Source of the DNA: Pocillopora damicornis
Taxonomy: Eukaryota
Reading direction: 5' to 3'
Assembly: GCF_003704095.1 (NCBI RefSeq)
Contig: NW_020847248.1
Span: forward strand, 1,178,001-1,242,000
DNA: 64,000 nt
Below the pieces are notes generated by a model. The model worked only from the letters and a program-made list of their open reading frames with translations. It ran no database searches and was not told the DNA's origin. Shown here piece after piece: positions 1 through 63,853 of the stretch; within the stretch, counting starts at the first letter, position 1, and each line of letters starts with the position of its first letter. The translations under genes and the position numbers were made by a program.

Positions 1-3000
1 GCAAGAGCCTTCAAGAGCCCAATCCAAAAGGTTTATTTATGATGTGTATTCCTCCACCCAATGTGACAGGGTCACTTCATCTTGGCCATGCCCTCACTAA
101 TGCTGTTGAAGACTGCATAACAAGATGGTAAGAAAATTGCCTATTTTTGGCCATGATTAGTGTAGTGTTTCTCTGGATGTGGAGACTGACTTCTTTAACT
201 TACAAAACCACATCTTTGTCAATGCTGCAATTATATAAACCACTACTTGGCTTTGTTGCTATATCCTAAATTATTAGTCTAATAAATGCTGTTTGTTTGT
301 AAACTAATAAGGACATGATTTCTCTAATTAGGAATCGTCAGATTGGAAAGACAGCATTATGGAATCCAGGGTGTGATCATGCAGGAATAGCCACACAGGT
401 ATTTGAACCCTTCAGTACTTGATATGTTTTGTATAATTCTCTCTTACTGCTTCTTGTTAAATTTCCTTTTACAACTTGTAAACATAATTTGATTTATAGT
501 GTCAACCCCTTCACCCTTGCACCTTCTAATAGATAGAATTATGGATGAAGTTATGAAATTCAATTTGTGAGGAGGAGGTCCTAATAATCATTTCTACAAG
601 TTTATTGGTTGACCACAATAGTCTTACTGACCTACAATCTTTCATGGCTGCAATAAATCTGATAATTCCATGGATAAGAGACTTTGTCAGATTTTGAATG
701 AACTCAACATGTACATTGTGGGACAGTACTTTAAGAGTTAGATCACTTTTAGTCAGTGCTTTACTCTTCTTTCAGGTAGTCCTGCATGTAATTCCATGGA
801 AAGACTTAATTCCTTTTCACTCTTTACACACTAACAACAGTATACATATTCACGATACTGTACCCCATNNNNNNNNNNNNNNNNNNNNNNNNNNNNNNNN
901 NNNNNNNNNNNNNNNNNNNNNNNNNNNNNNNNNNNNNNNNNNNNNNNNNNNNNNNNNNNNNNNNNNNNTTCACTCTTTACACACTAACAACAGTATACAT
1001 ATTCACGATACTGTACCCCATACTTTTTTTAAGGAACTGTCAAAGAGAATTTGTTTAACAATCACCAGCTTCTTAAGTTAGTGATCATTTCCTCATTTCC
1101 TTTGTTCTGATGAACTAAACATGTGACTCAGGGGTAATATTGCAGAAAGAAATTAGATGCTAGTCACTTAGGGGTCAGAGGGTTAAACATTGATTTTTGA
1201 TAACGTGAACAGAAACCAAAAGAAGACTGTATCTTTCATTTTAAATAAATTTAATATTTACTTGATAACTTTATTTTTAAAAGCAGCAAATAATTCTTGA
1301 CAATAGTTTACTGGATGAATGTTTTGTTTCTCTAGGTTGTGGTGGAAAAGAAGTTGATGCGCGAACAAGGTCTATCGCGACATGATTTGGGAAGAGAGAA
1401 ATTTGTTGAAGCAGTGTGGAAATGGAAGAATGAGTAAGTTTTTTTTTTTTCTGTCATTGTTGGCAAATAAAAGTTGACTCTGAAAGTTTGTAGCACCAGA
1501 TAGATTTTTTTTCCATAAAACTGAAAAAAATTACAAACACTTTGTTTTGATTCTGACAGGTGAATTGTGTACTATCCAATCACAATGATTGAAAAACCTC
1601 AAAACCCCAAATTTAACAATTGTTGCTGTTTGTATAATTTTAGCCTCGTTTTTCTACACATGACTGGCTTTTTCTATGACTACCATTGACATTCCACAGA
1701 TATTTCTGATGTTCTTTGTTTTCCAAGTTTCACAACAAAATATCATTGTACAACCAGAGATTGTACAAATTAAAAGTACAAATGTAGAAATTAACAGCGA
1801 TTTCTAAAATGTGTAAATTCATTTTCTCAACAGAAAGGGTGATCGTATCTATCAGCAGCTGAGAATGATGGGAGTTTCTGTTGACTGGGATAGAGCTTGT
1901 TTCACCATGGATCCTGTGGGTGAACTTTTGTTTGTTTGTTTGTTTGTTTGTTTGTTTTATGTAGTCAGACCATACACAATTTGTCCACTTTTAGGAGATT
2001 AGGTCGGCACTTTTGACTTTTAATCTCAACCCTTTAACTCCCATGAGTGACCAAGAAAGAATTTCTCCTTTCAATATCAATATAATATCAAGTAGACTAG
2101 CTATGAGAATAAAGGAAAATATCAATCAGGGGATAATTTATTAGTTGATCTTATACTAGATTCTCTGAGTTAACATGATGAGAATTTTATAACAGTCAGT
2201 AAGAAGATTTACTAACGAGATTGTGAGAGTGAAAGAATTAATTTAATGAGAGGCAGTACTCTGCAAGAAAAGAGGTATTAAGTCTTAATTTGTTTACAGT
2301 GAAATGTACATCTTCCAGCTAAAATCATGTCATTTATTTAAGTATGTCTTTGTTTGTGTTTCATCTTATCAGAAACTCAGCAGGGCCGTAAAGGAAGCAT
2401 TCATTAGACTCCATGATGAAGGACTCATCTACCGAAACAGACGGCTGGTCAACTGGTCATGTACCTTGAATTCTGCCATCTCTGATATTGAGGTAAACAT
2501 TCCAATTAAAATAGAATTCACTTCATATAGATCCAGCAACAATATCTGCAGGGTGTAAGGAAACATGGAAGAATTATGGCAGAGGGTAGAAATTAAAAGA
2601 GTAATCGCTACAAATGGTACTAAAGCAATGTTGTCAATCTTGAATAATACCCCCATAATGAATTGGCAAAATTCTCAAATTTTAGGTTGACAAAAAGGAA
2701 TTACCTGGAAGAACACTGCTACCTGTCCCAGGTTATGAAAATAAAATAGAGTTTGGAGTATTGGTGCATTTTGCTTACCCTGTGGAAGGTTCAGGTATTT
2801 TTTATTATTATTATTATTATTATAGAATTCTCAAATAGGAATTTTGATTCATCCGTAACTCGTTTCTATGTTAAAATAAGTCAAAATCTTTGGTTGATTT
2901 TGCATTTCCAACTTCCCAGTATGAAAGTCAGAGATGCTGCAGGGGATAGTGTTAATCATAATTATATTTTATGTTCTTATTGCAGATGAGAAGCTGATCG

Positions 3001-6000
3001 TTGCCACCACTCGTGTGGAAACAATGTTGGGTGATACAGCCATTGCAGTGCATCCAAATGATCAGAGATACAAGGTTAGGAGGATATACATGTAACTGGG
3101 ATTAACAATTATCCAATTGATAGAAAAAATTAGATCCGCCTTTTCCAATCAATGCTTGAGGAGTAAAACAAAGTCATCTGGAATTCAAGTTCTCACTGAG
3201 TACCAAAACTTGTGAATTTCAACTGTAATGAAATTTTGTAATGATTGTTTTTTTTAATGTATATTTAGCACCTTCATGGAAAATTTGCTCTCCATCCTTT
3301 CTGTAATCGCAAGCTGCCAATTGTGTGTGATGATATGGTTGATCCTGAGTTTGGATCAGGTACGTACTCACATGAACCCAAGAACCAGCAACACTTTAAT
3401 TTTGTGTTGTCCAATACCACTGTGTATGATGTTGGTAGCTACCACAGAGGGTAAAAGGAATTGTCCATGTCCTTAAGCACTCTTTAGTCCAGAGGCTATA
3501 GAAAAGTGATAAAAGGTGCTTGAGTGATAATGTTCAGTGTCCACTTCACTTTCTAGATTAAGGCTGATCATGGACATTAAATTTTAACATTAATTTTCAT
3601 AGGATCACTGTTTACAACCAACTACATTTTATCATGGAAAAGTGACTGTGTGATCTCTACCATTAGTGGCAACTGCACTGTGCATGTACAGGCTCAACAT
3701 AGGCTTTTTAAATATTAACTTAAATTTCCTTTAACATTGAGAAAGGATTGGTTATTTAGAGTGAAACTCATCATCAGAAATATATGGAATTTTACTGTAT
3801 TTCCAATAAGTGTCACAAAACTAACCTGCAAACAGCCACAGTTATCTGAGTGTGGTTGTTAGGTTTGCTTGTTTGTCCTCAATCCATTACACAATTGACT
3901 TTTCAGAATAAAATCAAAGTTTCCATGGTTTTCTGAGTTTTACGAGAAGTAGTGATCAGCTTTGGCAATTGCCACATAACTGTGTTTGAACTCTTCTCAT
4001 GCTCTTTTTTTTAGGTGCTGTCAAGATCACACCAGCTCATGATCATAATGATTATGGAGTGGGTCAGAGACACAGCCTTGACTTTGTCACTATGATTGAT
4101 GATAATGGTAACATCAAAGATCTAAAGGACTTTTATCCAGATTTCAAGCACTTTGCAGTAAGCTGTTTTCAGATCTGCTGCATGTACATGTATTGTCAGA
4201 AGAATATTGTTTAACCCATTGACTCCTACGTGTAACACGTGCCTACCCAAAAGTTAAAATTNNNNNNNNNNNNNNNNNNNNNNNNNNNNNNNNNNNNNNN
4301 NNNNNNNNNNNNNNNNNNNNNNNNNNNNNNNNNNNNNNNNNNNNNNNNNNNNNNNNNNNNNNNNNNNNNNNNNNNNNNNNNNNNNNNNNNNNNNNNNNNN
4401 NNNNNNNNNNNNNNNNNNNNNNNNNNNNNNNNNNNNNNNNNNNNNNNNNNNNNNNNNNNNNNNNNNNNNNNNNNNNNNNNNNNNNNNNNNNNNNNNNNNN
4501 NNNNNNNNNNNNNNNNNNNNNNNNNNNNNNNNNNNNNNNNNNNNNNNNNNNNNNNNNNNNNNNNNNNNNNNNNNNNNNNNNNNNNNNNNNNNNNNNNNNN
4601 NNNNNNNNNNNNNNNNNNNNNNGTGTGCGAAACCCACGAAGTAGAATTCATCATGCTTAAATCGATGTTTACTTGAATTCACGGCTAGAATATTGCGCAG
4701 CGTTGTGTTGAAAATACTGAAAGTTCTACGATTTAACACAAAATCTTCTATTAAACAATACTTTTTGGACATCTCATTAGTCAAACGTGATATTTACCGT
4801 GCCTTTGAATCTTCATAATGTCTCTAGGCCTCGTTTGAAGTCCGATAGTTTGGTTTTCGCTTTACGGCCCTAATTCGCATCGCTTTAGAGAATTGTAGTG
4901 TTGTCGACTCGAAAGCTTATTTTGTCGCCTTTAAGACCGTGATGTCCATTATTTTTCGAGCAGATTATTCTATAGCATTTTTCCTTTTCATTTTATGTTC
5001 CAGAAGGTCTAAAATGGTGGGAAAGGAACAGAAAATCCGACTTGAAAATATTGAAAGTCGGCCGCGCGTACGCCATTTCTTTGTATTTGATCATTTCTTG
5101 TGCACGCATAAAATGACGCCTCTGTACTACCCCCTAAAGTTATCAAAATAACTGCGCAAAAAACGGATTCTGATTGGTTTATAGATCCCCTAACAGTTTG
5201 GAGACAAAATTCTGCTTAGTAGGGGAGATAGGGGGGAAAGCGTCTCTCGCGCAAGTCCCCCACGCGGCACGGGCGGTTACGGGCGGTTCAGGTGTCAATG
5301 GGTTAAAATATTTATACTTGCCATACTTACATTTACGCATACACTAGATTCTAATAAAGTCTTCCATTGAGTGTGATATTGTGTCAGCTTGAACAATAAT
5401 TTGCCACTCGCTGTACACTATTCTTCTACAAAGCTGTCTCGGTGTACTAAATGTAACAGTTATATAGACAAGACAAGCAGAAAATACAGACAGGCAAATA
5501 TCATAATATGATGACTGACAGTGTACAGTGTTCTGTCTTATTTTAAGCATGACAGGTAAAACAAGTTTTAAATCTGTAGAGCAGTCGTTCTACCTGTTGA
5601 ATTTTCAAAAATTGCAAGGGATTTATTGAGTGAGAGGTACATATTAGAGGTGGTAAATTTTATGGACTACTGGTTCAAAAGGAGAACACTATGGGTTGCT
5701 ACAGTTTACATGTATGTACTGATTTGATTGCTGAAAAGTGGGCAATACAAATACTTCTGAATTGATGAAGGTTGTTTGAGAAAAGACATCTGGTTGAAGT
5801 ATAGAATGAGTGACTATCTTTGGAAACATTTATCTTTACCTTTTTTTGCACTCTTAATTTTAGGGTTTGAAGAGATTCAATGCAAGGAAAGTTGTACTTG
5901 ATGCTCTTACTGCTAAAGGTCTGTTTATCAAAACAGAAGACAATCAGATGGTTGTACCTATCTGTAGGTGAGTTTTACATGTAAGTTGGTTGGCCTGATT

Positions 6001-9000
6001 TAGTGACTTAACCCTTTACTCCCAGAATTGATTAACATGTTACTTCTCCTTTTAATATCCACACTGTATTCCAGCAAACAGGTAACGAGAATAATCAAAC
6101 TCATCAGTGAGGTAGAAGTTTTTATCTTGATCTAACAACAAATTTTCATAACTGATTTACATGAAATGTGTAGCAGCTAGTAAGGAGAATTCACAATCAA
6201 ATCTTGGGATTTAAAGGGATAAAGTGATCCTTTAAACCCTCCTACACAAAGGACAGGAAAGGAAACCTCTCATGCTTGTGAAGGTGAATTTTAAAATGGG
6301 AAAATGACATCTAGGAGACTTTAAATTTTAATGTCTCTTTTGAGGGATACCTTACAAAACCATTCTCTTTCATTCATGTTAAGTTCTGTACTGTATGGTA
6401 GTCTCTAATGGACATTGTTGCACTGATACAGCTCCTTACTGCTGCAGTATAAGGCTTAGAGTTACTCTACCTGACATTCTTTGCTTTCTCTCTCAGTCGT
6501 TCAAAAGACATTGTTGAACCTCTCATCAAACCTCAGTGGTATGTGGACTGTAAGGAAATGGCAGATATGGCTGTGAAGGTACAGTGACCCATAACGTCCA
6601 CAATTGATATTAAATGCTGTCGTTATCCAAGTTGTGATACAGATAAACCTTTTTTTCTTTATCAACCTTCACTATTAGTGAGACCACTTTTTTCTGCAAA
6701 CATCTGTTTTAAGTGGCTAATTTTTTAGAATATGGAATATTTGAAATGTGGCATAAGTCACTAGAGTAAGGGGAAAAGCAACCAGTTCCTTCTATCTCAT
6801 ATCCTTATTACTGTTACCTGTGTGATTGAATACTGCTTCAATACTGATAATTGTGTCTGCAGGCAGTGCGAAATGGAGACTTGAAGATCATTCCAAGTAT
6901 ACATGAGAAAGTATGGTACGGCTGGCTTGAGAACTGTAGGTTAGTTATGCAAAAACTTATCTCTGTATTTACCACGATGATTGATCCTATAAATGGCTCT
7001 TTTTTTGTCAGCGAGGACTTGGTTCAAACTGGTTTTTGAAACTTCACACCAGGGAAGTGATGTTGTAATTTGCGCCAGACAGTGGTTTGTGGGAACAGAC
7101 TGCCATTTGTTCTTAACTACACCTCTTGGTTGACGACAAACTCACATCTGATCCTGTAACAAAAGCTCTTATTCTCAGCGTCTATCTTGTTAAGGCAGTT
7201 TAATTTTTTACCAACCTAAACAGTTTGCCCTTCTACTTTTAGTGTCATGTCATGAACCTCCTGCAAGCACGGGCGCGAGTTGATATACATTTTCTTTCTC
7301 TAGGGATTGGTGCATATCTCGACAGCTTTGGTGGGGTCATCGCATCCCAGCATTTTTTGTGACCATTGATGATCCAAGTGTCCCACCAGGAGAGGTAAGT
7401 TTTTTTTTAAAGATGATAACGAATACTAAAAGAACAATTGTAAACTGAACGTCAAAGATAATCCACGATTGCGGTGTTTTTGCTTTACTTCGCTTTGCGA
7501 TTGGCCCACAAAACTCGCGCCATTCTCTCAACCAATCAGAGGCAAACTAAAACCATTCACGACTTGGTCGCACGCGTTTTCCCGCGCTTTGGGGCAGTTT
7601 GGTTATTTTTACTTTGAATTCTTTTTGGCTCTTAAGAGAATTTTCCTTTCCTCTGTTTGCCGTCGGGATTACTTTAGTTTTGGTGACGACATTCAATCGA
7701 AAAGCGCTCCAATTATGGCAAGTAATACTGATAGGTACAAATCCCATTTTTAAAGTATTTTCTGTCTTTAGAATTTTACAGAGAGTAAGTTTGAAAATTT
7801 ACTTTAGAATGCTCCGCGCATCGGATTGTTCCGTCCAGTAATTTTAATTGTCTGTCGTTGTCACGGTCATTTTCTAAAATATCAGTTACATTCGACGTTT
7901 CTCTTTTTCAGGATACTGATGGCAAATACTGGGTCAGGTAATGAAAAAAATTTATGTCCGCCAAAAAAAGAGAAAAAAAGAAGACAAAAATATTTAGGGG
8001 AAAATGAAAGGCAACAAGCAGGATTTTAATCTTCGTTATTGTGATCCTATTGTGTCGATTTTGTTTCAGTGGTCGCACCGAAGAGGAAGTATTGAAAAAA
8101 GCTGCAGAAAGGTTCAATGTAGCCCCCGAGAAGATCACTTTGAAACAAGGTAGTAATTGTTGTGATACCTGTTATGCATCCCCAGCCCTTGAAAATCCTG
8201 CCTGATCTCGTTCTTAACTTGTGTGTCCTGGTTTATTGCAGACGAAGATGTTTTGGACACGTGGTTCTCCTCCGGCTTGTTTCCTTTCTCCATATTTGGT
8301 TGGCCAGAAGAGGTTAGTTATCACATTTCGTGTGAGAACCTCAAGTGGAATTTTTTATTGGGTGTTGAATGTTATCGGAGGAGGCATCGGTCTTGTGTCA
8401 CTTTGCTCGGAAAACTCGCATCAATTACCGAAAGAATCAGAAACGAATACCAATTCCGACTGTCACTCACGTTTTCCCGGGCATGAACCCTTTTGCTTAT
8501 ATCTAGTTTGAGTTCTCATTGGCTTCTCGGTGTATGTACCTTTATTATGATTAGCTGTTGTAGTTTTGAATACTGCAGCTCCTCTGGGTGTGCTTCCATA
8601 AAGTGAAAATATCATTGTCGAAGGAATTTTTCATCTTTAATGTAACTAAGTGCATTTTATGGTTTATTTTTGACCCACGAGTTTTCAGTGAAGAGGAAGT
8701 GATGTTGTAATTTGCGCCAGACAGTGGTTTGTGGGAACAGACTGCCATCTGTTCTTGACCACACTGCTCGGTTGACGACCAATTCAATTCTGATCCTCTT
8801 TAACGAGAATGCCATATGAGTTTTTACTCTTGATGAGGGTTTTAAAACAGTCCCTCATAGAACAACCGTTAGCAAAGTAGGGACAAGACATCTACATTGA
8901 AATCCCTTTCTACTTTCTTTTCATTGCATTTCCTTTCTTAATAGACTGACGATTACAAGGTATTTTACCCTGGTACGTTGTTGGAGACTGGACATGACAT

Positions 9001-12000
9001 CTTATTTTTTTGGATTGCCCGGATGGTGAAATTAGGCCTTAAACTTACTGGTCAGCTGCCTTTCACTGAAGTGTTTCTTCACGCAATGGTGCGCGATGCG
9101 CATGGCAGAAAAATGAGCAAGTCTCTCGGGAATGTTATCGACCCCGTTGATGTCATTAAGGGGGTGTCTCTAGAGGTGAGGTGCATTTTCTTTAGGACTT
9201 GAACTAAGTTATAGGTTCAGTATAACAGGTGTCGCGTTCTTAGTCTGATTTTTTCTTTTCTTCTTCAAGAGATAAACAAACTCTTATTTGAGATAAACAA
9301 GTTCTTAAGCGTTGTCAGAGGTGGTATTTGATGTTGTTGTTTTTTCAATATGTAAATAAAAGAATAACTAATCCTTTGTGTTTTTAGGATCTACACCTTC
9401 AGCTTGAAAACAGTAACTTGGATCCGAGAGAGATTGAACGAGCTCGAAAAGGACAGGTTTGTCTGAGTATTGATGAATCTAAAACTCTTAATGGAAGTGA
9501 AAGTTCCTTTGATCACATGATACAAATTTTGTCATGCCAGATGACAAATTGTTTACTTAGACATTGAAAACAAACAAAATTTGACCTTGACTGAGTTACT
9601 TTCCATTGTCTTAAATGTTCCAGTGTGTATTTTGCCATACGCAGCCTACGGCTGGGCAGAACTAATGGCTGTAAAGTGGGGTAATTTAGCATTATCAAGA
9701 TAACGTAAATTGGCCACTGTGAAGAGTTTCAAAGCTGACGTTTCGAGCGTTTGTTCTTCGTCAAAGCGAATGAAGTGAAGGACCTTATGAGCGCTTCAGT
9801 ACGGACGGACAAGTTTGAGCCAGACCACTCGCCGACTCGTAAAAAATCTTCCTGCGAGAAGAAAAAAACGCTCGTCCTGCAGCACAACTAATGAGGCCTT
9901 CTCGCAAATTTAATTCCAAGACCTTGTTCAGGAGACAAGTTTTTTGTATCAACCCTAAAGTCTCGTCAGCCTCGCTGAGTGCGTCATCCGAGCATCAAAG
10001 CGTCGGTTTACTTTCTGATATTCGTTGTAACTTTCGTAGCTCTCTCGTCCAGAGCCAGTTTTCAAACCATCGATGCGGAGATGTCTTTGGAGAAATTCTG
10101 GCGCCGTGCATCTGACAGTTATAAATACGTGAACATCGCGGCCTCAAACTTTTTAACCCCTCAAAATGACTAGCATCTACTTTCTTCTTGCAAAATCATC
10201 CCTGAATCACACTTAAGGTCATGAGAATCAACCAAATGATCACCAACTAAAGAAGCTCCTTGATTGATAAACAAATTCTCTTCGTCAGCACCTGAGGAAA
10301 TGAGTAGAGAACAGTATGGAGAATATACATACTGATGTTGGGCGTGAAGGGTTGATCTCACTGTCTCTCTTTATTTTACTTTGGTTTATTTCAGACTTGG
10401 TTTATTTTTTTACCTTTCATTTCAGTGTTATGATACCATTTTACCCCGTAAAAACTTGTAATTGGGTATAACTCTGAAGCCTCTTAAATCTACAGAAAGA
10501 AGATTATCCTGATGGCATACCAGAGTGTGGCACTGATGCTTTGCGGTTTGCACTTTGTGCTTACACTGCGCAAGGTAAGTGTCCTTGTAGTGTCAACCGT
10601 TTGACTTCCATTAGTGACCAAACAATTTCTCCCTACAATATCAATACAATATAAAGCAGACAAGTGATGGGAATAAAGAAAAATATCCAATAGGGATTAT
10701 GAGTTAATCCAATACCACATTCTCCAAACTGACTTCATGAGAATTATAAGGCAGACCGTAAGGAAAGTTAATAATGAGATCTTGGCGGTTGAAGAGTAAA
10801 ATTACGGTGATACAAAGACTCATTCAAGCTCCTGAACTCTAAGGGAGCAGTTAATTAGATGGAAAACAAGCTGACCTGACTTTCCTTGTACTTTATTCTA
10901 CAGGACGGGATATTAATCTTGATGTACTTCGTGTGCAAGGTTATCGTCATTTCTGCAACAAGCTGTGGAATGCCACTAAGTTTGCGCTGGGCGGCCTGGG
11001 ACCTGACTTCAAACCGAATGTCAAACCAGAGGTGAGAGTCTTTGTTATGGAAATATCTCTTTCGGCAGGGGAAGGGACGGTAGTTATGCAGGGTGAGAGG
11101 CATTTATATAAAAAAAAAATCTGCCCCGCAAGTCATCTGCCAGGAATCAATAGCACGCACCGAGCTATTGTCCTACCATAGAGAGTTCTTGATCGCATTC
11201 TGTTTTGTCTCGTGTAATGAAAAGTTTTCATCTATTAACTGAGACAAGTCATTTTACAAACGGAAACTTCAATTAGTTATCAAACTGACATTTCTCTATT
11301 TGCGTTTCAAAGCTTATTGGGAGCGAAACTCTAGAAGACCGCTGGATTCTCAGCCGGTTATCTTATGCAGAGAAAACAGCAAATGAAGGCTTTAAGAACT
11401 ACGATTTCCCATCAGCCACGACGGCTATTTACAACTTCTGGCTTTACGAGCTTTGCGACGTTTATCTGGTAAGAAAAGTAGAATAAAAGGCGTGAAAAAG
11501 TTCTTTCTTAGAATCCTATTTAGTAATCACTTGTGAACTTCTTCGTGTTGCTTAAAAACATTTTTTGGTATTTTTTTCCTGTAGGAATACCTTAAGCCAA
11601 TTCTTCAAGGAGACAACAAAGAAGCAATCAACACAGCACGTAACACTCTGTATCCTTAAGATGCTCTTTTTAGTTTTCCCGGTGTACTTTTTATTTCCTT
11701 TTTCTTGAATCACTACAATGTTTAATTGAAACATGGCAGAAGTATTCTTCTTAAGAAAAAAGGGCAGAGGAAGAAATCATAGGGAGTAATATCTGATTAT
11801 TGACTGAGTGGAAGGGCCGGGCGAGAAATATTTGGCTCGAGATCATGATTAACGGACCGAGCGCTACGAGGTCCGTGTGTCATGAGCGAGAGCCATTGTT
11901 TTTCCTGTCCAGCCTAACCTAACTCGGTAAATAAGCATTTTATCATATGACCTCTAAGTGTTGAAAATTTCGAACATTTTGTTTCAACCCAAATAGGACA

Positions 12001-15426: not shown

Positions 15427-15917
15427 TTGAATTCAATGCTCCTGTCGAGAATAATGGTAAATGAATGGAATACCAAATATTTTTCTGCGTCTCCGTTGGT
15501 ATCAGAACCTGCGCAACTTTCTTTGTTCACCTCGCTCAGTCAACAGGCCCTCGCGGTCTGGCCAATCCTGAACCCCACTATGGGCCGTGGTCCTCAACTC
15601 ATTCCGAACTTCTCTTGGACAACAGCTTAAGGAAGAAACCCGGAAACTCGGTTGCTATTCACCTTCACTGTAATGCTGCGTGCGTGCATGTGCTGTTCGT
15701 GGAACGCGATGAAAGGTTCTCGAAGAGTGATTGTTGCGTTGTTCGACCTCTATTTGCACCTTCAAGTCACGGTCAGGCTGTTTAAGCGGCGGTCTCGTCC
15801 ACCATCTACAATGAGTGGCAAAAGTTTTGGGGCGCTAATTCTCACCTTGTTTGAACGGTTTCCAGTTTACTCATTTTAGGGCTGGATCTGAGCAACTTTC
15901 TTGGGAAATGGGTGGTT

Positions 15918-15920
<3 letters not shown>

Positions 15921-15956
<36 letters not shown>
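15921..15956 (+). repeat. Poly-G tract (36 nt) downstream of VARS stop
   Basis: Direct observation. A poly-C tract of 28 nt also lies at 34383-34410. Confidence 0.9.
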
Positions 15957-51400: not shown

Positions 51401-54400
51401 TGTTGACAATTGCTCTCAGTGTTAAGTTTCAAATTTTCTACTTTTGCTTGTTGACAGTTGCTCTCAGTGTTAAGTTTCAAATTTTCTACTTTTGCTTGTT
51501 GACAGTTGCTCTCAGTGTTAAATTTCAAATTTTCTACTTTTGCTTGTTGACAGTTGCTCTCAGTGTTAAGTTTCAAATTTTCTACTTGCTGCTCTACTGC
51601 TACCCAAAGAACAACTGTCTTTGCAGTTAAGATGATACAATGCACAATTTGTTACCATATTCCTTGCTGTATGTAAAAGTTTTACACTTACATGTATTAT
51701 CCAATAGTTTTTTTGGGGTTTATTGGCTCATATCTTGAGACAAGATGCTCATCTTTAACTGTCAACTCACTTTTGAGAAGCACTTTGTGATTAAATGGTT
51801 TACTAATTTTCTCCTCCAACTACACAGGTTCATCTCTGCAAGTAGCTCTTGTAGGATTGTTCGCTGAGATACTCTGTAGGTCTGTATTTTTTAATGTACT
51901 GTGAACAATTGAGTTGATCTACCATGGAATTGTAATTTAAAATGTCTGCAGTGCTATATTCTCATTTATTTAGTACAAATTTGTAAACTAATGATTTTTA
52001 TGCAATACATGTGAAGATGTTTCTTAGAGATGTTTCAAAGCTAGGCTATTGTTCCAGTTGTTCAAGGAGTTGACACAGTACAAGTCATGTCTCTTTTACT
52101 TTCTGTAGGTTTCCAAACATGTGTGTTGGTGCTTTGACAAGAGACAGTGTTCAGCAGGTAATGTTTTAGTGAAGTGATTTTAAAAACAAATTATTAGACA
52201 ATCTATTATTGATTTTCAGTGAGAATTGAAACTCTTTGAAATCTTTGAATTTCAATTTGAAATTGATTAGAGGATAAATTGACCACAGTAATGAATTTTA
52301 AAAATTTGATGTAGCAAACGTTTAACAGAAATTTCAGATTTTGCAACAGAGTATACAGGCTTTCTTTAATGATAAACTACCTCCTGAACTGGCTTGTAGG
52401 AGAACTGAAAAGATCTAGTGTTCGTCTTGACTGAAAATGTGAGGGCTTGGGTATCCAAGAGTCAAAGCTTTGAAGGGTTTTAGTAGGCTCAAGTATAATT
52501 CCCAGATGGGTAACTTGAAATTCAGCCAAAAAAGGTTTTTTTGGCCTTTTTACAAATTGGAGAACCAATATATATGCATGTAATATATATATATATATAT
52601 ATATCTTTTAAATTTGCTTGTTTGTTTTGTTTTGTGTTGCTTTTTTCATTTGTTTGAAAGACCTCTTGCCTATGTCCTCTCTGTGCATATATCCTATCAC
52701 TAATCTCAACAGAATTCAGCCCATGTTAAGCCCACAACTAATGTTATAGTTACCAGTACTGAAGTATCTATCTATCTGTAGGCATTGTCAAGTGGAATAT
52801 CAGCTGAACAGGTTTAATATTATTTTCTTTCTTCTATCAGATACTTGAAAAAAAATTTCCCTTCCTTAAAATGTTTAGTACACACTGTTTGTTTCAAAGT
52901 TGTGCATATGTGTAGGAAGTGATGTGAATCAGTTACAGTGCAAGATATTATGTACTAACAATAAAAAACAAAAAAAACAAGAATTTAATGTTTATTATTT
53001 TTTTGTAGATTCTTCACTTTTTGAGGACTAGAGCACACCCTGAAATGTTAAAAAAGGTTTGTATGAAAATTTGTTCTTTGTTCAAGTACAAGTTAATCTC
53101 TTTTCTGAAATAATGATACTTACTATTTCATGCTTTGTGGATCATGAAAAATTTTGTAAGTTAGTTATTTTTAAGCTTCATTGTTATTTTTTTCTACCTC
53201 CTTGTTGTTTGTCTACCAATAGAATTGGTATTGTCAATTTAAGGATAATTCTTTACAGACATAAAATGTTAACAGTGTTGTTGCTCAGGACACTTTCCCT
53301 TAACTGAAATTGGTCGAACTTACTGACATATTAAACAAAAACACTAAAAAAAATCCTTCAGATACTTTTGAAGAGTTTCCTGCACAACTTTTTTTCCAAA
53401 AAAATCCCGATAAATGTCAGTATCTTCACAACTGCTAAACTATCTCTCCCCTAACCCAACATTAACCTTAACTTGTTATCAGTCAAATTTCGTTCGGTCA
53501 GGGGAGGGGTAGATGTGCAGTTGCTCAGATACTGACTTTGATCCAAAATATCATCAGAGGAGTGAATGAGTCTTGGAGGTCAACTGATCTGAGCGGATAT
53601 TCAGTTAAGCCAGTCAGTTCTGACTTATGTTTTCTGGCCACGTGCGTCATGTTTCCTTCTGTCACTTATTAAACGACAATCTCTTTACTTCCCAGAATCC
53701 CATCATACCACCAACAATAAGTGATCAAATTCGACTCTGGGAACTGGAAAGGAGCCGAATGAAGTTCACTGAAGGTAAGGTCATAGTATCTTAGACTTAA
53801 GGGTGTCCTTAAGAAACTTACCCCTTTTATTCAGTGCTCAAATATACCCAAACTGCAAGGACAATATATTTTAACTCAAATAAAACGTTAAGCAAAGTTA
53901 ATCAGTTTTTTTTAAGGAGTCCATGTCGCCTTTCATTTTTCGCATTTATGGTGTTAACCTTCCAGAGACCTACACTTAACAGAAATATTTTCTTTTCTCC
54001 GCAGGTGTGCTATACAACCAGTTCCTCTCACAAGCAGATTTTGAAACCCTAAAGAAGTATGCTGAGGTAAGGGACCTTGTGCTAGTATCATGATTCACTG
54101 AACATTACTAGCTCACCAGTATTGCAACTATGTTGGCTTGTTGTTACATACACTCACATTTTCCTGAATTTGAATTAATTGCACAAAGTGAAGTGAATTA
54201 AAGTGAACGCATGGAGATTGAAATGTTTGGGCAAACGATAAGTCTGTTGTTTGTGTCTTTCGACTTTGAATATGTCAGTTTCCGTCTCAAAGTAATAGGA
54301 ACAGTTGAATACCTTTCTCTGTACCTATATATTTTGCATTGGTTTTACGTCGCTCTCGCAACCAGATTTATTGGGGCGATTAATCGGAACAAAGATTGAC

Positions 54401-54824
54401 ATCGTCATTAGACAATGACAACGCAAACTGCTTGAAGCGCGGGAAAACGCGAATAACATAGTCGCAATTGTTTTAAGTTTTGCGTCTGATTGGTTTAGAG
54501 GGTGACGCGAGTTTTCTGGGCCAATCGCAAAACGAATTAAAATGAAACAAAATCAAACCCGGATTACTTCAACACTTAATTCAAAATTTCTCTATATTCC
54601 ATCGAGTTGTTAGGCCATTCATCAGAACTTAGGCAAAGGACTTTCGCACTTAATCTGTTTCTTCTACTTTCAAACTGTTGTTGTAGCTGATCTTCCCTAT
54701 CGGTTTCTCTCTGCAGGATCTTGGTGTTCTAATGTGGGCTAACTCATCAAAGAGAGTTATTGTTGTTAGCCGCTCAGGTCATGATGACGTTAAAAGGTTT
54801 TGGAAACGACAGAAAAACACGTGA
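45434..54824 (+). CDS. GTF2H4: General transcription and DNA repair factor IIH subunit p52 (Tfb2), 17 exons
   Basis: Exons approx 45434-45573, 46517-46621, 47740-47868, 48433-48529, 49215-49315, 49430-49541, 49807-49875, 50322-50405, 50541-50601, 50958-51035, 51828-51879, 52109-52157, 52782-52811, 53009-53056, 53696-53774, 54005-54066, 54717-54824 join in frame. Motifs: [117 protein letters not shown]. Confidence 0.95.
51303..51586. repeat. 48-bp minisatellite, about 6 copies, in GTF2H4 intron
   Basis: Unit CTTGTTGACAGTTGCTCTCAGTGTTAAGTTTCAAATTTTCTACTTTTG at 51303, 51351, 51399, 51447, 51495, 51543, nearly identical. Confidence 0.95.
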
Positions 54825-57800
54825 CAGCTCGTGCTAATGCATAAGCTTGCAAGCCGTACTACTTCCTCGTGGTTGGCACGTGACTAGTAATGGAGAAACC
54901 GGTCCACGCGTGCGTCAGGGAACTACAAAAACGATGTGACAACTTCTGTACGTACTGGCTGGGTTTTTAAGGCACGTGAATTTCACTTGGCGCATAAAAT
55001 CTAGCCCATGCCTTCGTTTAGAAACTTGAAGTGAAATCGAAGAAATTTAACAAAAGGAAAAACAGATCAGGAAGCTGTGACCGAACAAAAATCCATCTCC
55101 AACTTAAAGAAAAATATTGACATTGACTAACAAATAGGAGAGAGATTTTTTTTTGATATTTTTTTTATTGGCGTATTCCAATTAATACTGTATATACTTG
55201 TTTCTGGAGGATGAAAACATTTGTAAACCTTTTACTGATTAGGAAAATAGTTTAACAAAATGTTTTCGCTCAATGGTGTTTTATTGCGTGCTTTTCCCCT
55301 TTCAGCATTCGCGTAGCTATGAACTTTCCAGCTAATGTTCCTTCCCTTTGTGTGCTATAAAAGTCGGGAAAGGTCCCTTGACTTTTTGTGGAAAGTGTTA
55401 GATTTGGCCGTGGAAGGTCTTGGTACGAGACTAAAAAATGAATTCAAGTAACATCCTGTATTCAGCCTGTTCTCAAAAAGCTCCAAATTTGTTATGCTCA
55501 GAAAACCCGATTTATGCTTAGTGCTTCAGAATGTTTTGCGCAGTGAAAATTGCCGCCTTCTCTCTGTTTAAGTTGCTGCGTTTCTGTAAATGGTACCTGT
55601 GCTGAACTTGGAATAATTTAGTCAGTGCATCTACCGACAAAATTGCGTTTTGCGCTTCAATTGGAAAGGGTATTTTTCGCGCGAAATTAACCTCCCAAAT
55701 CTTTGCCGCATTTTCGATTTAATTCGAATCATGTTTGGCCCTAACATGGTTTCTTCAGGATAACTTCTGACTCTTCTATTCGTCTGCTATCAAATTCGTT
55801 CTTTTAACCCGGCTTCCACGTAAAGCTCAAGGTCAAAGGTTATCTGCAGCGGAATCAGATCAGGGTATTACCTGATACCTGTCAAAAGAAGACAAGTACC
55901 AATGACTCAAGCTTTTGAAAGTTGTTAGGCGTCGCCTTGGCGATGAACACCTCAGATTTTAACCCTTTAAATCCCAGAAGTGATTACCATGTAACTTCTC
56001 CCTATAGTATCAATACGTTAGACAGCAAACAGGTAGTGAGAATACTCAAACTCATCACGTACAATTTTGTTATCTGGATTCAACGCGTTATTCTCGCGAT
56101 CAATTTACAAAGAAATGTGTAGTAGGTAGTGAATACTCAAACTCATTACGTACAATTTATTAGCTGGATTCAACACGTTATTCTCGCGATCAATTTTCAA
56201 AGGAATGTGTAGTAGCTAGTGGGGAGAATTGACAATCAGATCTTGGGAGTTAAAGGGTTGAGAACAGGGCTAATCCGTCGAGTGAATCGAGTTTAGGGAG
56301 GGGCATAATCGGATGAAATTTAGCGAGATAAAGCAAAACTTACCTTTGGACTATATCTCTGAGCTGAAAATCATGAAGAAATACGAACTTAATAGAACTT
56401 TACTTATGCCGGGAAGCATGCTAAAGACGATTTCGATTTGCATTCATCGACAAACCTCGGCTGCTAAGAGGAAGACTAGCAGCAAAAGGCATTGCATCTC
56501 TGCGTTCCCTTTGGAGTCGATCAAATACGACGATTAAAATTCCTTCACCAACGCGAGAAACGTACTTCGCATAAATAGATTACCTTTAGGAGGGCTAAAG
56601 TTATGTGCACCGGTAGAAGCCAATTACCCTAGTTATGTACATTTCGGCAAACAAAATGAATAAATGAAATCGATTGTAGTAGAACGCAGTTTTTTCAGCT
56701 TCCCAGCGAATTTTTTGGCGTTACCAAGACCGCTCTTATTCTGAGCCACAAAAAATTATTCCACTTTTTTTTAGGACCGTTACCCAATACAGCACCTTCC
56801 CTCCATAACAATCTTGATTTCCAGGCCCTGTTCTAATCCCACAATGATGCCTAATATTTTGTTTACACAAATCTTCTAGTGTAAAACTCCTTGCCTTTCA
56901 AATGTGCCGCAAACCGTCTACTTAGAATACCTAGAAACGTACTTTCATTGCTTTTACGTTACTCTCGAATTAAGGTAATCTCAGAATATAACTTCTAAAG
57001 CAACCTCTCTCCCTCTAGATATCATTATGAATACACACTTAAATATCAAGGTGGAATCGTTTTCTCTGTAGAGTAGCATATATCTTAAAGGTGCCTGTTG
57101 ATGTATGAAGATTTCAAAAAAAAGGTTCCTCGTAATTAAAAATCGGCACACGCAAGATAAAAGACGCTGTTTATTCCTTCGCTACACACGTGTGAAAACC
57201 TTGAGATAACGCTAAACGAAAAGACTATTTATTCTAAAACTTTTAATTCATAACCTGTCTCTGTCAGTGAACACAAACGAAGGAACGTAGGAGAGAAAAT
57301 TCGTGAGGCTCATCCGAGAAAAACGACTGAACAAGAACAAATTTTTGATTCCTACGCTTTTGAAACTCGGTTGGCATCAAGTACACGCACTGTCTCTGTA
57401 AAAACATGACCACAGAAGAACTAGCCAAGTGAGTCCTACTTACGACTCGGTCAGTGAAGGCCGGCGTTTATACCATTTTCTTGAGCTCCCCTGCTTTCAA
57501 ATCACATAAAAAATTAAGTATCCATTTAGTCTCCATTGTTCAGTTCAGCATGGAGTCATCAATTGATTACGGCCAGCTGCAGTCGAATTGAATGCTTTGG
57601 CAGTGAACCTTAAAAACACAGCACATGTTAATTAAAGTTAAACACTATGGCTTCCCCTTTCATAGACTACGCGGTCTCTTGAGGTTTTTCAACGGCAGGA
57701 AACAATCGATAGCCATGAGTCTGCGTTTAATGCGGAGGCGTAAATTTCGACTGAAAACAAGCCACATCCGGATTCCAAACTGAAAAAGTCAGACAACGGA

Positions 57801-58462
57801 AAAACTCACTAAGGACCATTAAGTTTGTCGTCTTAAATACAGATTTGTTTCGTTAAGGTTTATTTTTGTGCTTGAGTTGACTAATATGTTTATTGTAGCA
57901 CATACGTGAAATCATTCCAAGAAGCTTATATTTGCTGGGAGCAGGCGGTTTCGTATCATCTTGAAAATTGTTTCGATGTCTTTCACGATAGGCATTCATT
58001 TAGTTGCTTCGTTTTTAATTAGTGTTTGATTATTCCTCTGTTGACACAGTTTTGCGGGCTTTTAATCAAATGATCGAGGTGTCATAACCTCACGTAGTGA
58101 TCACAGAATTGTAAACTGAAACTGTTTTTGTCAGAGCAGTCACAAAGGAAACTCTCGCTGTAAACAAGCTCTTCTTCACAAGGCGGACGGACCTATATCA
58201 GCGCAAAAAATTACTTTGGGTCAATTAAACTTGGGCAAATTCTTTGACTTCCCTCACCATAAGAAGCTACGTGATTCCTGCTAATTCGAAAAACTTCCTT
58301 TACACACGTTTTCAAAGGAAGCCACAGGCTCTGTTTGTTTTTACGCCAAGTGATTACCAAAATTAGCCACTAACAAGCAAGTTATTGTCATCGCTGACAC
58401 CTTCAATACCCAGAGCCTCACTTGCACGTGGACAGTGTTATGAATTTTTTCATCCCGAAAAG

Positions 58463-61400
58463 ATGTCCGCTTCACCAATGGATACAAGGCAAGTAGGTAG
58501 ACATGTCTTTATTTTCTCGAAGCAGAATGGAAGCGAGAATTCTCCTACAATTATTGCAAAGCCTGTCAACATCACACAGGATTTGCCACGAGAATTTCTA
58601 CGCTATTTAAAAACATTGTTCGATATTCTTGACGAGAAGGGAACAGGCTTTGTGCGACTCTCTGACATAGAGACTAGGTGGAAAACTAAACAAGGCTCGA
58701 ATGGACTCGGAGAGGGAGTCATGGAAAATTTACGGAAGGTTACCCCCAAGAATGGGCTTCTGAACTTTGAAAGACTATGTACTGGAATGAAATTGGCCCT
58801 TAAAACGCAACCACGCGCCCAAACAAATGGTAGTGCGAACGGCTTAGATCACTCAACCAGAAGATCGAACTCGCTACCGCAGCTGGACACGGCTACTAAA
58901 GGTTGGACTTCCGATTCTAGCGAGGACTCATTTGCAGGCAACGAAAACAGAACTAAGGCTCAAGTAATTAACAAATTAAGGGATTGGAAGAATGAAAATC
59001 AAGAAAAGAGGCGTTCTCTGACTTTTAATGCTTCAAATCCACGGACAAACGGGAACGATAGCTCCGGAAGTACAAGTAAGTGTTTCTTTTGTTACGACAC
59101 GGTGGGCTGGTAGTAAATGATATTCATGGGAATTTCGGCCTTGAACCTATAAATAACCACCAATTTTCTCTTTGTGGTCCGAATTTTCTAATTAAATATG
59201 ACTAGTAAAAGAAATAATTTTTCTTTCGGGGCGCTTTTAACTTCATAAACGAACGCGCGTTAATTGAAAACAGTAAAGGTGTCCTAATCTAAATAGAACA
59301 CGGATTAAAGCATACCGGGCGCTTTAGCATATGTCCATATTTCGACGTTTTTACGTCAAAGGATGTCGCATATGTTTAAAATTAGTTCAATGGAACAGTA
59401 CTACAGAACTAGTGGCGAGACAATGTTTATTTTTTTTTATCTTTTGCACTCGTTCAATTCGCTTGAAAATTTATTATGTTTAAACTACCACCCTCTTGAT
59501 CTGAAGTAGTTTTTTTCGCATTTCAGAGGTTCTAAGACTGAGAAGTATTTACAACATGATAATTCGTTTGGCGTCAGATTAACGCTAAACGATTTAGTTG
59601 TAATCCTGAATTTGGGCACAAAAATTGGACGTGCCAAAATGTGTAAGCCATTCCAGCGAACACAATAGAGATTACGATTATCAAAATACCAGGTGGTCTC
59701 TCTGCATGGCGACCTCGATTATGTCTAAACAACATGTCAAAACTTTAAAATTAGACTGTAAGGCCAATGTACCGCTAATGTCTTCAGCCATGAAAAAATG
59801 TTTATTTTACATTGTCAATATAACATATCTTTTTCGTTGCATATGATTGATGAGAATATTAGCTGACAATTTAGAATTCCTGTGGAGATTATAGTTAACT
59901 TTTTAAAGTTTCAGAGGTTACAGATTTCATGTCTGGGCCTGTTGTGGTTCTTTCTCAAAAGTTATGTAATTGAGTCTTGACAGACCATGCGTCACATTAT
60001 TTTTTTGTGATAAACAAACTACCTCTTAACTTAGAAATGCTGGAGGCAGTGCTAGAAATAATCTTAAAACGGAAAAGGATGTTGAAAGCAAGGGAGATGC
60101 AGCAATATAATCAGGATGATGATGCAGCAGTGTCTCAATTATATCCCCTAGGATGTCAATATACATCCCTTCACAAGAGTTTCTGCCCTCAACTTCTTCC
60201 TAAAAAATATTGGATTTTTCTCATTCAATCTTAATATACAAATATCTTGGCTTTGAGACCCCCCCTAAGCCAACCCACATTTTGCAATGTCTAATATTTT
60301 TCATTAGATTAATGGATGGATTTTTCAAGCATTGATCACAATAGGTGAAGGACATAATTTGGAAGTGGAAAATAGATGCTTATAGGAGTTAATTTTTTAT
60401 AGAGGGGCATTACCAATGATGGTTGAAATTCCATCCCTATTTAGGGCAACACAAGTTTAAAGTAGACTGGGCCTTCATTAGAGTAAGTGGTGATGGGGGA
60501 AAATGAAAGACTTGTGAGACACTTAGAATCCAGTCTGTAAAACAGATGGAAACTACATGTACATGTACACAATTTGTATTTGCAATACAAATCACAATGA
60601 CATCACTTTACCTTGATTTTCACAAGCATTATAAATGACAAGGAAATGTTGAGTTGGAGTTATATGATACTCACTCTTCCACTCTGTTTTGAAAAACATC
60701 ATCTTCTTTGCAATATTTTCAAATGACAATAATGATACACTGTTTACACAAAGCTAACTTTTTAGCTACTCTTTCTAGACAGCTGTCTTTTTACTGAGTC
60801 ACCTTCTGCTACAGGAATTTTAATCCCCAACTCAGAGAACTGAAAGGAATTTTAGACTTCTTAGCAGAAATAAATTGCATTGTAAATAAGATTTGAGACT
60901 TTTTGCAAGAGCTGACAACTTTGACTTTAATATTGGATAAATTGTTTAAGAGACCTATGAATTCATGGTATTTTCCATCCCATACACTAGATCCTGCATG
61001 TTGACATAATTTATATGAGGCACTTTCTATTGAAAGGTCCTACAAAAGTGACAACTCTAATTACATTACTGACTGACACAGAACTCAGCCTCTGTGAGAT
61101 ACTTTAGGTTTTAAATTGTCCAGTATTACAGAAATGTTCTGATTATTTTCCACTAACTGTTTATTTAGCAAAAAGATACTGAGCCATTTTAAAAAGAAGA
61201 CCATGCTGTTCTTGTAAATAGAGATTCCAACAATTTAATTTACTGTTTCTATTATCAGTGAATTGTGACTGCATGTGCCAAACTGATTTCATGTTTGTGT
61301 TGACTTGCAGGTCCATCCTCAGGAAATGGAAGTCCAAAAGGAAGATCAAATTCTACAACAAAAGTCTACTTTGTTGGTAAAGAAATCAGCAGTAGTGTAC

Positions 61401-63853
61401 CAACAAATTTAAATGGACATATTAAAGATTCTGCTGCTCCTACTGAAATCCGGACAATTGACAAGGTAATTCATAAGATTATTTAACTTTCCTCACTCTC
61501 AAAATGTGGTGTCTTAGTTCAATTGGTAGAAGTATCTTAAACCACTTTCTGGTAGGAAAGGAATGCATTTTTTTAAAGTAACTATTATTCAATTAAATTA
61601 CTGAATATACGGTACGCAACAAATTGAAGGGTGTCCCTTTTTATTATAGTGCAATCAAAATTTATTGATATAATGAAAAAATTAGTAGAATCAACTATTA
61701 TTGTCCTTCATGATATGCAGTCAGGTTTCCAGACATATGTCTCTGTAATATTGATTATTGATTAAGTATTTAAAAATGATAATAATGGCACAATTTATTC
61801 TCCCAAGTGACTCTTTTGGTCAAAACAAATTATTTGCAAGCATATCTCATTTATATTTTGTCCTAGGTTAGAGTAATTTTTTTGATGACAACTTTGATAA
61901 ATATTGTATACTTATATCAATGCATGCAAGTAAGATTTGATAAGCTTAATATTCTGGCTGGAAAATGTAGTTTGCTTGATTTTTGTTGAGGGTCAAGCTT
62001 GGGAGATAAAAACATACCTGCAACTACCCGTAACCCTTCAGCTTGCAGCAGTGAGAGGAAATTGTACAATGGCTGCAAAAATAGTCTGGAATTTTTACAT
62101 GTAAACTATTTCATGCTATTTGAAGACTTTTCATCATGGACATTCACATCATTCGGTATCAGAGATATATTGATAATCCTAAAGATGGAAGAGACTTGAA
62201 GGGTGCAATGTTGGCACTCAAACTCAATTAAATGGCATCAAAAGTTATGTTTTTTCTTCTTTGTTGTACTCTGTTGATTAATTACGATGGAAGCCATGTT
62301 TAATATCTCTTTGAAAACTAAATGCTGTGCATTAATGTGGTCTTAATTAAATTGTAAGCACTGTAATAGCTTATTATTAATTTTATTGGTTAGATAGTAT
62401 GGTAAGGCTTGATTTGAAAACAAGAATGCTGGCAATATTTTTTATTCCTGTGATATTGTAGGATGCTAGATTACAAGAGCTTGATGATGAGCATGACCTT
62501 TTACAAAATGGTCTTCAGGTCATCGAAAAAGCTAGAAAGTGGTATTTTAAAAGAATCACAGCTATTCAGGAAGAGAAATTACACCTTCAAAATGATGACC
62601 AATATTCTCTTGAACAGGTAATTCATTATGTCATCATAATGTTTCATAACAAGTTTGACCAGGCGCCTGTATCAGAGAACATTCTAAAAATGCACATGCA
62701 TTAATTGATCAATTGTGATACATGTCGCTATAACTTGTTTAGATCAACTTGAAAATGATAAGTAAAAGCAATTCATTTTTGTAGTTTTGTATCATGAATA
62801 TAAGAAGAATATTTACCAACAAACCACCTGATTAAGGAGGCTGTGTAGCTGAATGAGTGACTCCTCAATGTCTGCTATTCACTTCAATTTGTTAACTGAA
62901 GAAAACATTCTATGAGGGAGGCAACAGGCAGATGAGCCTTTTCATCATATAGCAAACCAGTATCCCACTTTTAACATTTTCCACAAATCAGTCATTGCTT
63001 ATAAATATTGCCAGGATCATGCACCCTTTAGCAAGTATTTTAGGAATGAAGATTTGTATGTTGGTTATATGGCCATGAACAGTGTGGCCAACGGAAAGGA
63101 AGTATCAATGAAATTTGTTTTTCTAGGTGATGGGAAATACTTTTTGCAGTATAATTATGTTTGTCCTACTTTTACAGTATAATTATGTTTGTCCTATTTT
63201 TATTTGGCTTGAATGTTGCCCAGATTTCAAGCTAGAAAGAGAGCTTGAAAATTGCTGAAGATGCAATCATGGCAAAAGGGGCCATTTGACATACCAAAAA
63301 AAACAGAACTCTGACTAACAGAAATTATAGTCAAAATGAACACCATGTATGTTGCAAAAGGTCTGTAAGGCTTACAATTTGTATTCATTACTATAAAAAG
63401 ATTTCTGAATTTTTTTCTCTTGGGCTAACTTTTGAATATTAAATTTTTATATACATTTATTGCGCTCATCTACCCCTTTGCAGTTTCAGTATGAAATTTT
63501 GCTTCACAAGACAAGAAGGAGAGAGCTTGGTTTGGATGATGACTCTTTTAAAGAGCACAAACATCACATACAGAGTGTGAATCAGTCCTTAGAAAGAATC
63601 ATTGAAGGGAAATCACCTGTAAAGGTACACATAGTTTAGGTCTCTTGTTTGAGTTGCTTTTTCATTATAGAAGTTTCACCCTCAGGATTGATCATATTTA
63701 GAACAATTTTTGGCTCTTCCTTCTGCTCAGCTGATATGCTAACCCCTTTTGAATAATATGGATCATTTTTTTCCTTAGGCATCACCAACTTCAAGTTCAG
63801 AAGCTAGTAATGAAAAACAATGGCTGCAGGATGAAGTAGAACGTCTAAAAAAG
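58463..63853 (+). CDS. SAPCD2: Suppressor APC domain-containing protein (SAPCD2/SAPCD1 family), 3'-partial
   Basis: Exon 1 (58463-59075) encodes LPREFLRYLKTLFDILDEKGTGFVRLSDIETRW...LRKVTPKNGLLNFERLCTGMKLAL, resembling the SAPCD2 N-terminal EF-hand-like region. In-frame exons follow at 61311-61465, 62462-62617 (LQELDDEHDLLQNGLQVIEKARKWYFKRI, Suppressor_APC coiled coil), 63484-63624 and 63779-63853. The gene continues past the window. Start codon choice is uncertain. Confidence 0.82.

Follow-up and report, generated by a model that had tools for sequence, protein, structure and literature searches.

A stretch of 64,000 nucleotides from the pocilloporid stony coral Pocillopora damicornis (contig NW_020847248.1, positions 1178001-1242000, hereafter the window) carries four consecutive genes, which encode a valyl-tRNA synthetase (ValRS, +), the ATP-binding cassette (ABC) transporter ABCA2 (-), the TFIIH subunit GTF2H4 (+), and SAPCD (+). 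We take their human counterparts to lie at 6p21.33, in the major histocompatibility complex (MHC), for VARS1, GTF2H4, and SAPCD1, and at 9q34.3 for ABCA2 and SAPCD2. The coral neighbourhood is probably a composite of gene pairs of different ages, a limited vestige of conserved gene order rather than a surviving proto-MHC block. The four genes are functionally unrelated housekeeping genes, and their neighbourhood is real and transcribed. An earlier note, made from the sequence of the window alone, had proposed that the window keeps the arrangement that preceded the duplications separating the human 6p21 and 9q34 gene sets. The gene identities and the bridging position of SAPCD were upheld, and the scaffold carries genes of the paralogon type, but the tight block was not shared outside hexacorals at the loci compared.

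Four Consecutive Genes in the Window

The features of the window, which lies on a scaffold of 2.17 Mb within an assembly of 234.35 Mb in 4393 pieces, are listed in Table 1. Homology searches were run exon by exon, and the ABCA2 exon translations were joined, locally, only for one tree row. The gene order given in the earlier note, with no gene in between, was confirmed by the scans: the open reading frames (ORFs) in the spacers and introns matched no Pfam family, a tRNA search of the window returned none, and an Rfam scan of the whole window found no family at the gathering score.

An R1_ABCA1 domain was found in the transporter gene, which has the architecture of a full transporter: membrane and nucleotide-binding domains in two copies each, and an R1 regulatory domain at the C terminus. 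Its 31 exon pieces were colinear with residues 1-2415 of a fish (Menidia) ABCA2, and colinear also with ABCA2 of the crinoid Antedon. A profile search with a 265-aa exon of this gene supplied the sequences of the tree as well as the anchors of the synteny loci; the best full-length matches of this exon were fish ABCA2 and a crinoid ABCA2-like protein. Among PDB structures, ABCA1 ranked first, followed by ABCA7 and then ABCA4, and ABCA3 came far behind. In quick LG+G4 trees, built with 30 and then with 36 rows, the window gene fell in a clade with a Shimodaira-Hasegawa-like approximate likelihood ratio test (SH-aLRT) support of 100, together with ABCA2 of Menidia and genes of frog, amphioxus, the tunicate Clavelina, Antedon, Lottia, the rotifer Brachionus, and Xenia. 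A separate clade (SH-aLRT 99) contained the ABCA1-like genes of vertebrates, tunicate, urchin, rotifer, snail, and arthropods, and the window gene was apart from both ABCA1/4/7-like and ABCA12/13-like genes. The coral and fish ABCA2 sequences were 61% identical over 1439 columns. The tree, which the earlier note had suggested as a check, thus bears out its identification of the transporter as ABCA2. Since the tree separates the two clades, the split between ABCA2 and ABCA1-like genes predates cnidarians.

The third gene carries the Tfb2 and Tfb2_C domains, as expected from its earlier identification as GTF2H4, and all six profile matches in the genome fell within it, making it the sole locus. 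Its exon 1 ends at 45570, exon 2 spans 46514-46621, exon 3 starts at 47740, and the last exon is 54711-54821; GT..AG joints were observed at its introns in RNA contigs, and nine of its exons are in common with the gene of the sea anemone Actinia. The EF-hand-like SAPC2_N domain followed by the Suppressor_APC coiled coil likewise established the fourth gene as SAPCD. The closest named relative of its product was that of Stylophora pistillata, the two being 85% identical across the complete ORF and 93% identical within exon 1, as expected of a pocilloporid genome. The spacer between GTF2H4 and SAPCD is non-coding, because its alignment with Stylophora was found on both strands.

The ValRS Gene and the Assembly Gaps

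The identity of the first gene as a valyl-tRNA synthetase was established exon by exon. The exon ORFs matched the Pfam families tRNA-synt_1 and Anticodon_1, and each exon tested had the valS profiles TIGR00422/NF004349 as its best match, the matches being colinear along the gene. The class I core motifs (HIGH and KMSKS) are present, as HLGH in exon 3-128 and KMSKS in exon 8945-9199, and the closest PDB match was the Thermus ValRS (1gax), not an isoleucyl- or leucyl-tRNA synthetase. The gene starts upstream of the window, at contig position 1175814, and its last exon ends at window position 15423, with the stop codon immediately after. The N-terminal extension is lysine-rich; a glutathione S-transferase-like N-terminus was considered and rejected, the upstream exons having no Pfam match.

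This gene was the sole ValRS copy found in the genome search. Cytosolic and mitochondrial ValRS have been reported to have separated before animals and choanoflagellates diverged, and cnidarians to have lost their mitochondrial aminoacyl-tRNA synthetases, retaining only two (PMC4558845). Taken together with the single copy and the lysine-rich extension, this split and this loss place the coral enzyme most likely in the cytosolic (VARS1) lineage, provided that the published picture holds. In that case, the partner of GTF2H4 in the human GTF2H4-VARS2 pair is a paralogue no longer present in the coral.

Two observations were made at the 5′ end of the gene. An in-frame upstream methionine in the first exon (contig 1175700-1175969; L013:7700-7969, +) adds 38 residues that are basic and Ser/Thr-rich, contain no acidic residue, and resemble a mitochondrial presequence. 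Through alternative starts, a single enzyme could be targeted to the cytosol and the mitochondrion alike, in keeping with the loss of mitochondrial synthetases in cnidarians. An amidase gene (L013:6755-7471, -) starts about 250-370 bp from the ValRS starts, in a head-to-head arrangement. A further amidase exon (L013:4230-4481, +) was detected on the opposite strand in a stretch with five N gaps, where the scaffold may be misassembled.

All three N gaps of the window are non-coding. The exons that flank gap 1 (303-419 and 1336-1434) matched valS profile positions 62-88 and 88-119, and those that flank gap 2 (3990-4157 and 5864-5968) matched positions 268-314 and 311-344, with a GTAAGC donor after 4157 and an AG acceptor before 5864. 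As the profile positions continue across each gap, gaps 1 and 2 are intronic and no core exon is missing. Gap 3 lies between ValRS and ABCA2, and the adjacency of these two genes therefore depends on a scaffold join.

Table 1. Features of the window (window positions unless marked as contig positions). N: run of N in the assembly.
Feature	Position	Strand	Details
Valyl-tRNA synthetase gene, 3′ part	1..15426	+	First two exons or so upstream, contig 1175700-1178000
Assembly gap 1, 100 N	869..968		ValRS intron
Assembly gap 2, 361 N	4262..4622		ValRS intron
ValRS/ABCA2 tail-to-tail spacer	15427..17697		2.3 kb between stop codons; ORF without Pfam family
Assembly gap 3, 10 N	16377-16386		Abuts poly-C run, inside ValRS/ABCA2 spacer
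ABCA2 orthologue, full ABC transporter	17698..45365	-	At least 31 coding exons; ATG 45075-45073, stop 17698-17700
Interval between divergent ABCA2 and GTF2H4 start codons	45076..45433		358 bp; putative shared bidirectional promoter
GTF2H4 (TFIIH p52/Tfb2)	45322..54824	+	ATG 45434, stop 54822-54824
GTF2H4/SAPCD spacer	54825..58462		Aligns with Stylophora on both strands; ORF without Pfam family
SAPCD gene	58463..64000	+	Last exon past window end, contig 1242445-1242576 (about 450-580 bp beyond)
SAPCD exons	58463-59077, 61307-61465, 62462-~62700, 63481-63627, 63779-63847	+	tblastn with Stylophora protein
Dispersed repeat of ~175 bp, further copies	6012-6191, 24145-24352, 55954-56259		Also in flanks (L004, L005, L013, L015)

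The Head-to-Head Junction of ABCA2 and GTF2H4

Transcription and splicing of the first exons of both ABCA2 and GTF2H4 were observed in polyA RNA contigs from three studies, such contigs revealing neither the strand nor true 5′ ends. Exon 1 of ABCA2 extended from 45010 up to 45306-45365 (introns 44886>45010 and 43661>44793), and exon 1 of GTF2H4 from 45322-45429 to 45570 (introns 45570>46514 and 46621>47740). Within any one run, the contig ends of the two genes were 15-110 bp apart. Since only 358 bp separate the two start codons and the transcript contigs almost meet, ABCA2 and GTF2H4 probably have a common bidirectional promoter. Divergent gene pairs with a shared bidirectional promoter are a known cause of conserved microsynteny in animals. 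The coral pair resembles them in its head-to-head arrangement, in the short distance from ATG to ATG, and in its nearly touching contigs, but differs from them in that it is not kept at the octocoral, crinoid, limpet, and fish loci.

Gene Neighbourhoods in Other Species

The relative ages of the gene pairs were inferred from their neighbours in other genomes, each locus being viewed from 10 kb before to 10 kb after its anchor gene. Besides Stylophora, the cnidarian comparison set consisted of one octocoral (Xenia) and one sea anemone (Actinia).

In Stylophora, GTF2H4 is located directly upstream of SAPCD in the same orientation, and the same sulfotransferase and DHHC genes as in Pocillopora follow in order. 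In Actinia tenebrosa, SAPCD and GTF2H4 are on opposite strands and tail-to-tail, GTF2H4 coming about 540 bp after SAPCD. As both species have the pair, it has been kept across Hexacorallia with one gene inverted, and it is the only part of the four-gene arrangement that recurred in our comparisons.

The neighbours of ABCA2 were different in the octocoral, crinoid, limpet, and fish. In Xenia, the gene is flanked by UBAC1, a TVP18-like gene, an acyl-CoA dehydrogenase gene, CENP-W, and a partial ABCA copy; in Antedon, by an ODR4-like gene, an MLLE gene, RPL28, and a gene with a DED domain; in Lottia, by a scramblase gene; and in Menidia, by a fucosyltransferase (FUT-like) gene and a PP2C gene. 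No ValRS, GTF2H4, or SAPCD gene was found within 10 kb of ABCA2 in any of these four species. Conversely, no GTF2H4 or ValRS gene was present within 10 kb of SAPCD in an oyster (Pinctada), a mayfly (Cloeon), a spider (Larinioides), and one further eukaryote, and a local search with all the window exons at these ABCA2 and SAPCD loci revealed no unannotated copies of the partner genes. A region search with Xenia ABCA2 returned five proteins, with no hexacoral among them. Because the neighbours of ABCA2 and SAPCD differ elsewhere, the adjacency of all four genes is no general feature, and ABCA2 appears to have come to its position secondarily. The proposal that the four adjacent genes form an ancestral block was therefore not sustained at the loci compared outside hexacorals.

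At the Xenia locus, UBAC1 (L028:6928-9477) lies directly upstream of ABCA2 (10001-23457), and a partial ABCA2 duplicate follows the full gene. Both UBAC1 and ABCA2 are presumably located at 9q34.3 in human.

A second pair involving SAPCD had a wider distribution. In Pocillopora, a single-exon gene encoding a DHHC palmitoyltransferase (contig 1247463-1248509; L014:5463-6509, +) follows SAPCD and the sulfotransferase gene. A DHHC gene (L029:13325-14259, -) was also found 570 bp after SAPCD in the mayfly Cloeon, where it precedes ANAPC2, and an unannotated DHHC ORF (L030:33859-34623, -) was detected 4.8 kb after SAPCD in the spider Larinioides. When searched against the coral genome, the spider ORF gave its highest score with the copy linked to SAPCD (206 bits; second best, 122 bits), and the coral, mayfly, and spider proteins have C-terminal motifs in common. 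The neighbours of the DHHC protein in a protein atlas include clusters named ZDHHC24, which we regard only as a lead to its identity. This SAPCD/ZDHHC24-like pair, common to cnidarians and arthropods, appears to predate the cnidarian-bilaterian split.

The probable sequence of events thus begins with the SAPCD/ZDHHC24-like link, the oldest of the pairs, which arthropods also have. The GTF2H4-SAPCD adjacency is probably of at least Hexacorallia age. The placement of ABCA2 between ValRS and GTF2H4, head-to-head with the latter, was found neither in the octocoral nor in the bilaterians compared, and is most simply explained by a hexacoral or scleractinian rearrangement among genes that already shared a chromosome.

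Linkage-Group Context and the Human Map

Within 100 kb of the window, we detected a SPOUT1-like RNA methyltransferase gene (Methyltrn_RNA_3), an eIF3G-like RRM exon, three Ctr copper-transporter genes, a DAO+GCV_T dehydrogenase gene, an amidase gene, a uromodulin-like ZP gene, and several genes encoding G protein-coupled receptors. The scaffold also carries, at a distance of 455 kb from the window, the only PBC/PBX locus that the genome has. In human, we take SPOUT1, SLC31A1/2, and PBX3 to be located at 9q32-34 and EIF3G at 19p13.2. The scaffold would accordingly be part of the linkage group from which human 9q32-34, 6p21.3, and 19p13 derive, in keeping with known macrosynteny.

The earlier note had suggested an inspection of the flanking scaffold for markers of the MHC paralogon, which in human comprises 6p21.3, 9q32-34, 19p13, and 1q21-25. 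PBX is on the scaffold, and SPOUT1-like, eIF3G-like, and three CTR genes are in the flanks; ten marker families (Notch, BET, CSNK2B, MutS, PRRC2, ATP6V1G, UAP1, ATAT1, ANAPC2, and NELFB) were located on other scaffolds of this fragmented assembly, and UBAC1, the twelfth marker, had no match anywhere in the coral genome. By a rough estimate, in which the scaffold makes up about 1% of the genome and is assumed to be about one eighth of a chromosome, one located family out of 11 is close to the expectation from macrosynteny and weakly above chance. Compared with the paralogon, the coral neighbourhood is alike in that its four genes have counterparts that we place in 6p21.33 or 9q34.3 and in that its scaffold holds the single PBX gene together with SPOUT1-, CTR-, and eIF3G-like genes; it differs in that none of the four is a classical anchor and in the scattering of the ten families.

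Two of these families were themselves close to each other: ANAPC2 and NELFB are about 95 kb apart on one coral scaffold (C3290:250194-250376 and C3290:343447-346629). As we take both to be close neighbours at human 9q34.3, this scaffold may be a second 9q34.3-like piece of the coral genome.

The human map also lends itself to a direct comparison of gene order. We take VARS1 to lie one gene from SAPCD1, ABCA2 a few genes from SAPCD2, and GTF2H4 about 0.85 Mb from SAPCD1. With these positions, the claim that a single SAPCD gene bridges the 6p21.33 and 9q34.3 gene sets was found to hold. Relative to the human GTF2H4-VARS2 pair and the MSH5-SAPCD1-VWA7-VARS1 run, ValRS, GTF2H4, and SAPCD are close in both species, but ABCA2 separates ValRS from GTF2H4 in the coral, the orientations differ, and the coral ValRS is most likely of the cytosolic lineage, since cnidarians are reported to have lost the mitochondrial enzyme (PMC4558845). 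The HLA (human leukocyte antigen) region has been described as including GTF2H4, VARS2, VWA7, and an MSH5-SAPCD1 read-through (PMC8248358), and ABCA2 serves as a marker of the chromosome-9 paralogue (PMC10751288). In the proto-MHC literature that we searched, ABCA2 was the only one of the four genes to be named, and our literature search found no paper joining GTF2H4 with microsynteny. In amphioxus, proto-MHC genes are reported to be spread along a whole chromosome, their compaction being later (PMC13012124), so that the accepted view does not include a compact block in the ancestor.

Alternative Explanations

Several points weigh against the view that the neighbourhood is a composite of ages. 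The closeness that we assume for VARS1 and SAPCD1, and for ABCA2 and SAPCD2, in human exceeds what simple macrosynteny would give and favours an older linkage of the genes. The comparisons rest on one octocoral and one sea anemone, and the contig of the latter stops inside GTF2H4, so that the ABCA2 side is not readable there; as the loci were seen over ±10 kb, the genes may be more loosely linked in the octocoral and in bilaterians. On the side of the linkage-group context, only one of the 11 located marker families (PBX) is on this scaffold, and chance alone would give at least one such match roughly one time in ten, by a rough estimate. Finally, the ValRS-ABCA2 join spans the 10-N gap.

In the cnidarian-bilaterian ancestor, the four genes may have lain within tens of genes of one another, though not always side by side, the vertebrate duplications having then split them between 6p21.33 (VARS1, GTF2H4, and SAPCD1) and 9q34.3 (ABCA2 and SAPCD2). 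We consider such a loose ancestral linkage possible but rather doubtful. All four orthologies hold, SAPCD is a single pre-duplication gene joining both human sets, and each of the presumed human pairs (VARS1-SAPCD1 and ABCA2-SAPCD2) would be expected in roughly 1% of cases at most in a shuffled linkage group of about 1000 genes. The ABCA2 of Xenia abuts UBAC1, which we take to be a 9q34.3 gene in human, and fish ABCA2 has a FUT-like neighbour, as does human ABCA2. However, none of the pairs was observed at any non-hexacoral locus read, the proto-MHC genes of amphioxus are reported to be chromosome-wide (PMC13012124), and GTF2H4 is paired in human with VARS2, whose lineage had already separated before animals arose (PMC4558845).

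On a strict reading of the earlier note, the four genes directly adjoined one another in the ancestor and have been held together by regulatory or structural constraint; this seems to us very improbable. The possible shared promoter of ABCA2 and GTF2H4 and the adjacency of GTF2H4 and SAPCD across Scleractinia and Actiniaria would be in line with it. For ABCA2 it is already contradicted, since the gene has no adjoining GTF2H4 or ValRS in the octocoral, crinoid, limpet, and fish, and coral and anemone do not have GTF2H4 and SAPCD in the same relative orientation, which is hard to reconcile with a fixed regulatory unit. It is also unlikely, although somewhat less so, that the human positions match by coincidence or that the coral order is partly a scaffolding error. 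The 10-N gap between ValRS and ABCA2 and the location of ten of the 11 marker families on other scaffolds could be explained in this way, but the ValRS exons are colinear across the two larger gaps, Stylophora has GTF2H4, SAPCD, the sulfotransferase gene, and the DHHC gene in the same order, and the nearby PBX, SPOUT1-like, CTR, and eIF3G-like genes agree with a linkage-group origin. A composite of gene pairs of different ages thus remains our preferred reading of the neighbourhood.

Other Features of the Region

A dispersed repeat of about 175 bp was noticed in the window, with two tandem units at 47175-47627 in intron 2 of GTF2H4. It reached a depth of 2,000-84,000 in the polyA RNA contigs, with many odd joints, as would be expected if it were a short interspersed nuclear element (SINE)-like or miniature inverted-repeat transposable element (MITE)-like sequence present in many transcripts.

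The three Ctr genes are located within 60 kb downstream of the window (L016:7801-8136, -; L018:8731-9279, -; L022:6969-7262, +), and they are interleaved with the uromodulin-like ZP/D8C gene and with the DAO+GCV_T gene, which is of the sarcosine or dimethylglycine dehydrogenase type.

Significance for the Origin of the MHC Region

Chromosome-scale conservation of linkage between cnidarians and vertebrates is established, and how the MHC arose from a linkage group that preceded the duplications has long been asked. Our results leave the current picture unchanged: the tight block is not common to the octocoral or the bilaterians read, which agrees with the late formation of a compact MHC indicated by amphioxus (PMC13012124). 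The SAPCD/ZDHHC24-like genes constitute a candidate conserved pair to be tested for constraint, and so does the divergent ABCA2/GTF2H4 pair. It is conceivable, if on balance unlikely, that ValRS, ABCA2, GTF2H4, SAPCD, and the ZDHHC24-like gene are the remnants of a small block that has been tightly linked for more than 600 million years and was split by the vertebrate duplications. If this were true, the coral arrangement would be the one that preceded the split, with SAPCD as a new anchor joining the MHC to the chromosome-9 paralogue. The locus adds a clean, gene-dense example of a pre-duplication SAPCD gene located beside the counterparts of both the 6p21.33 and the 9q34.3 gene sets.

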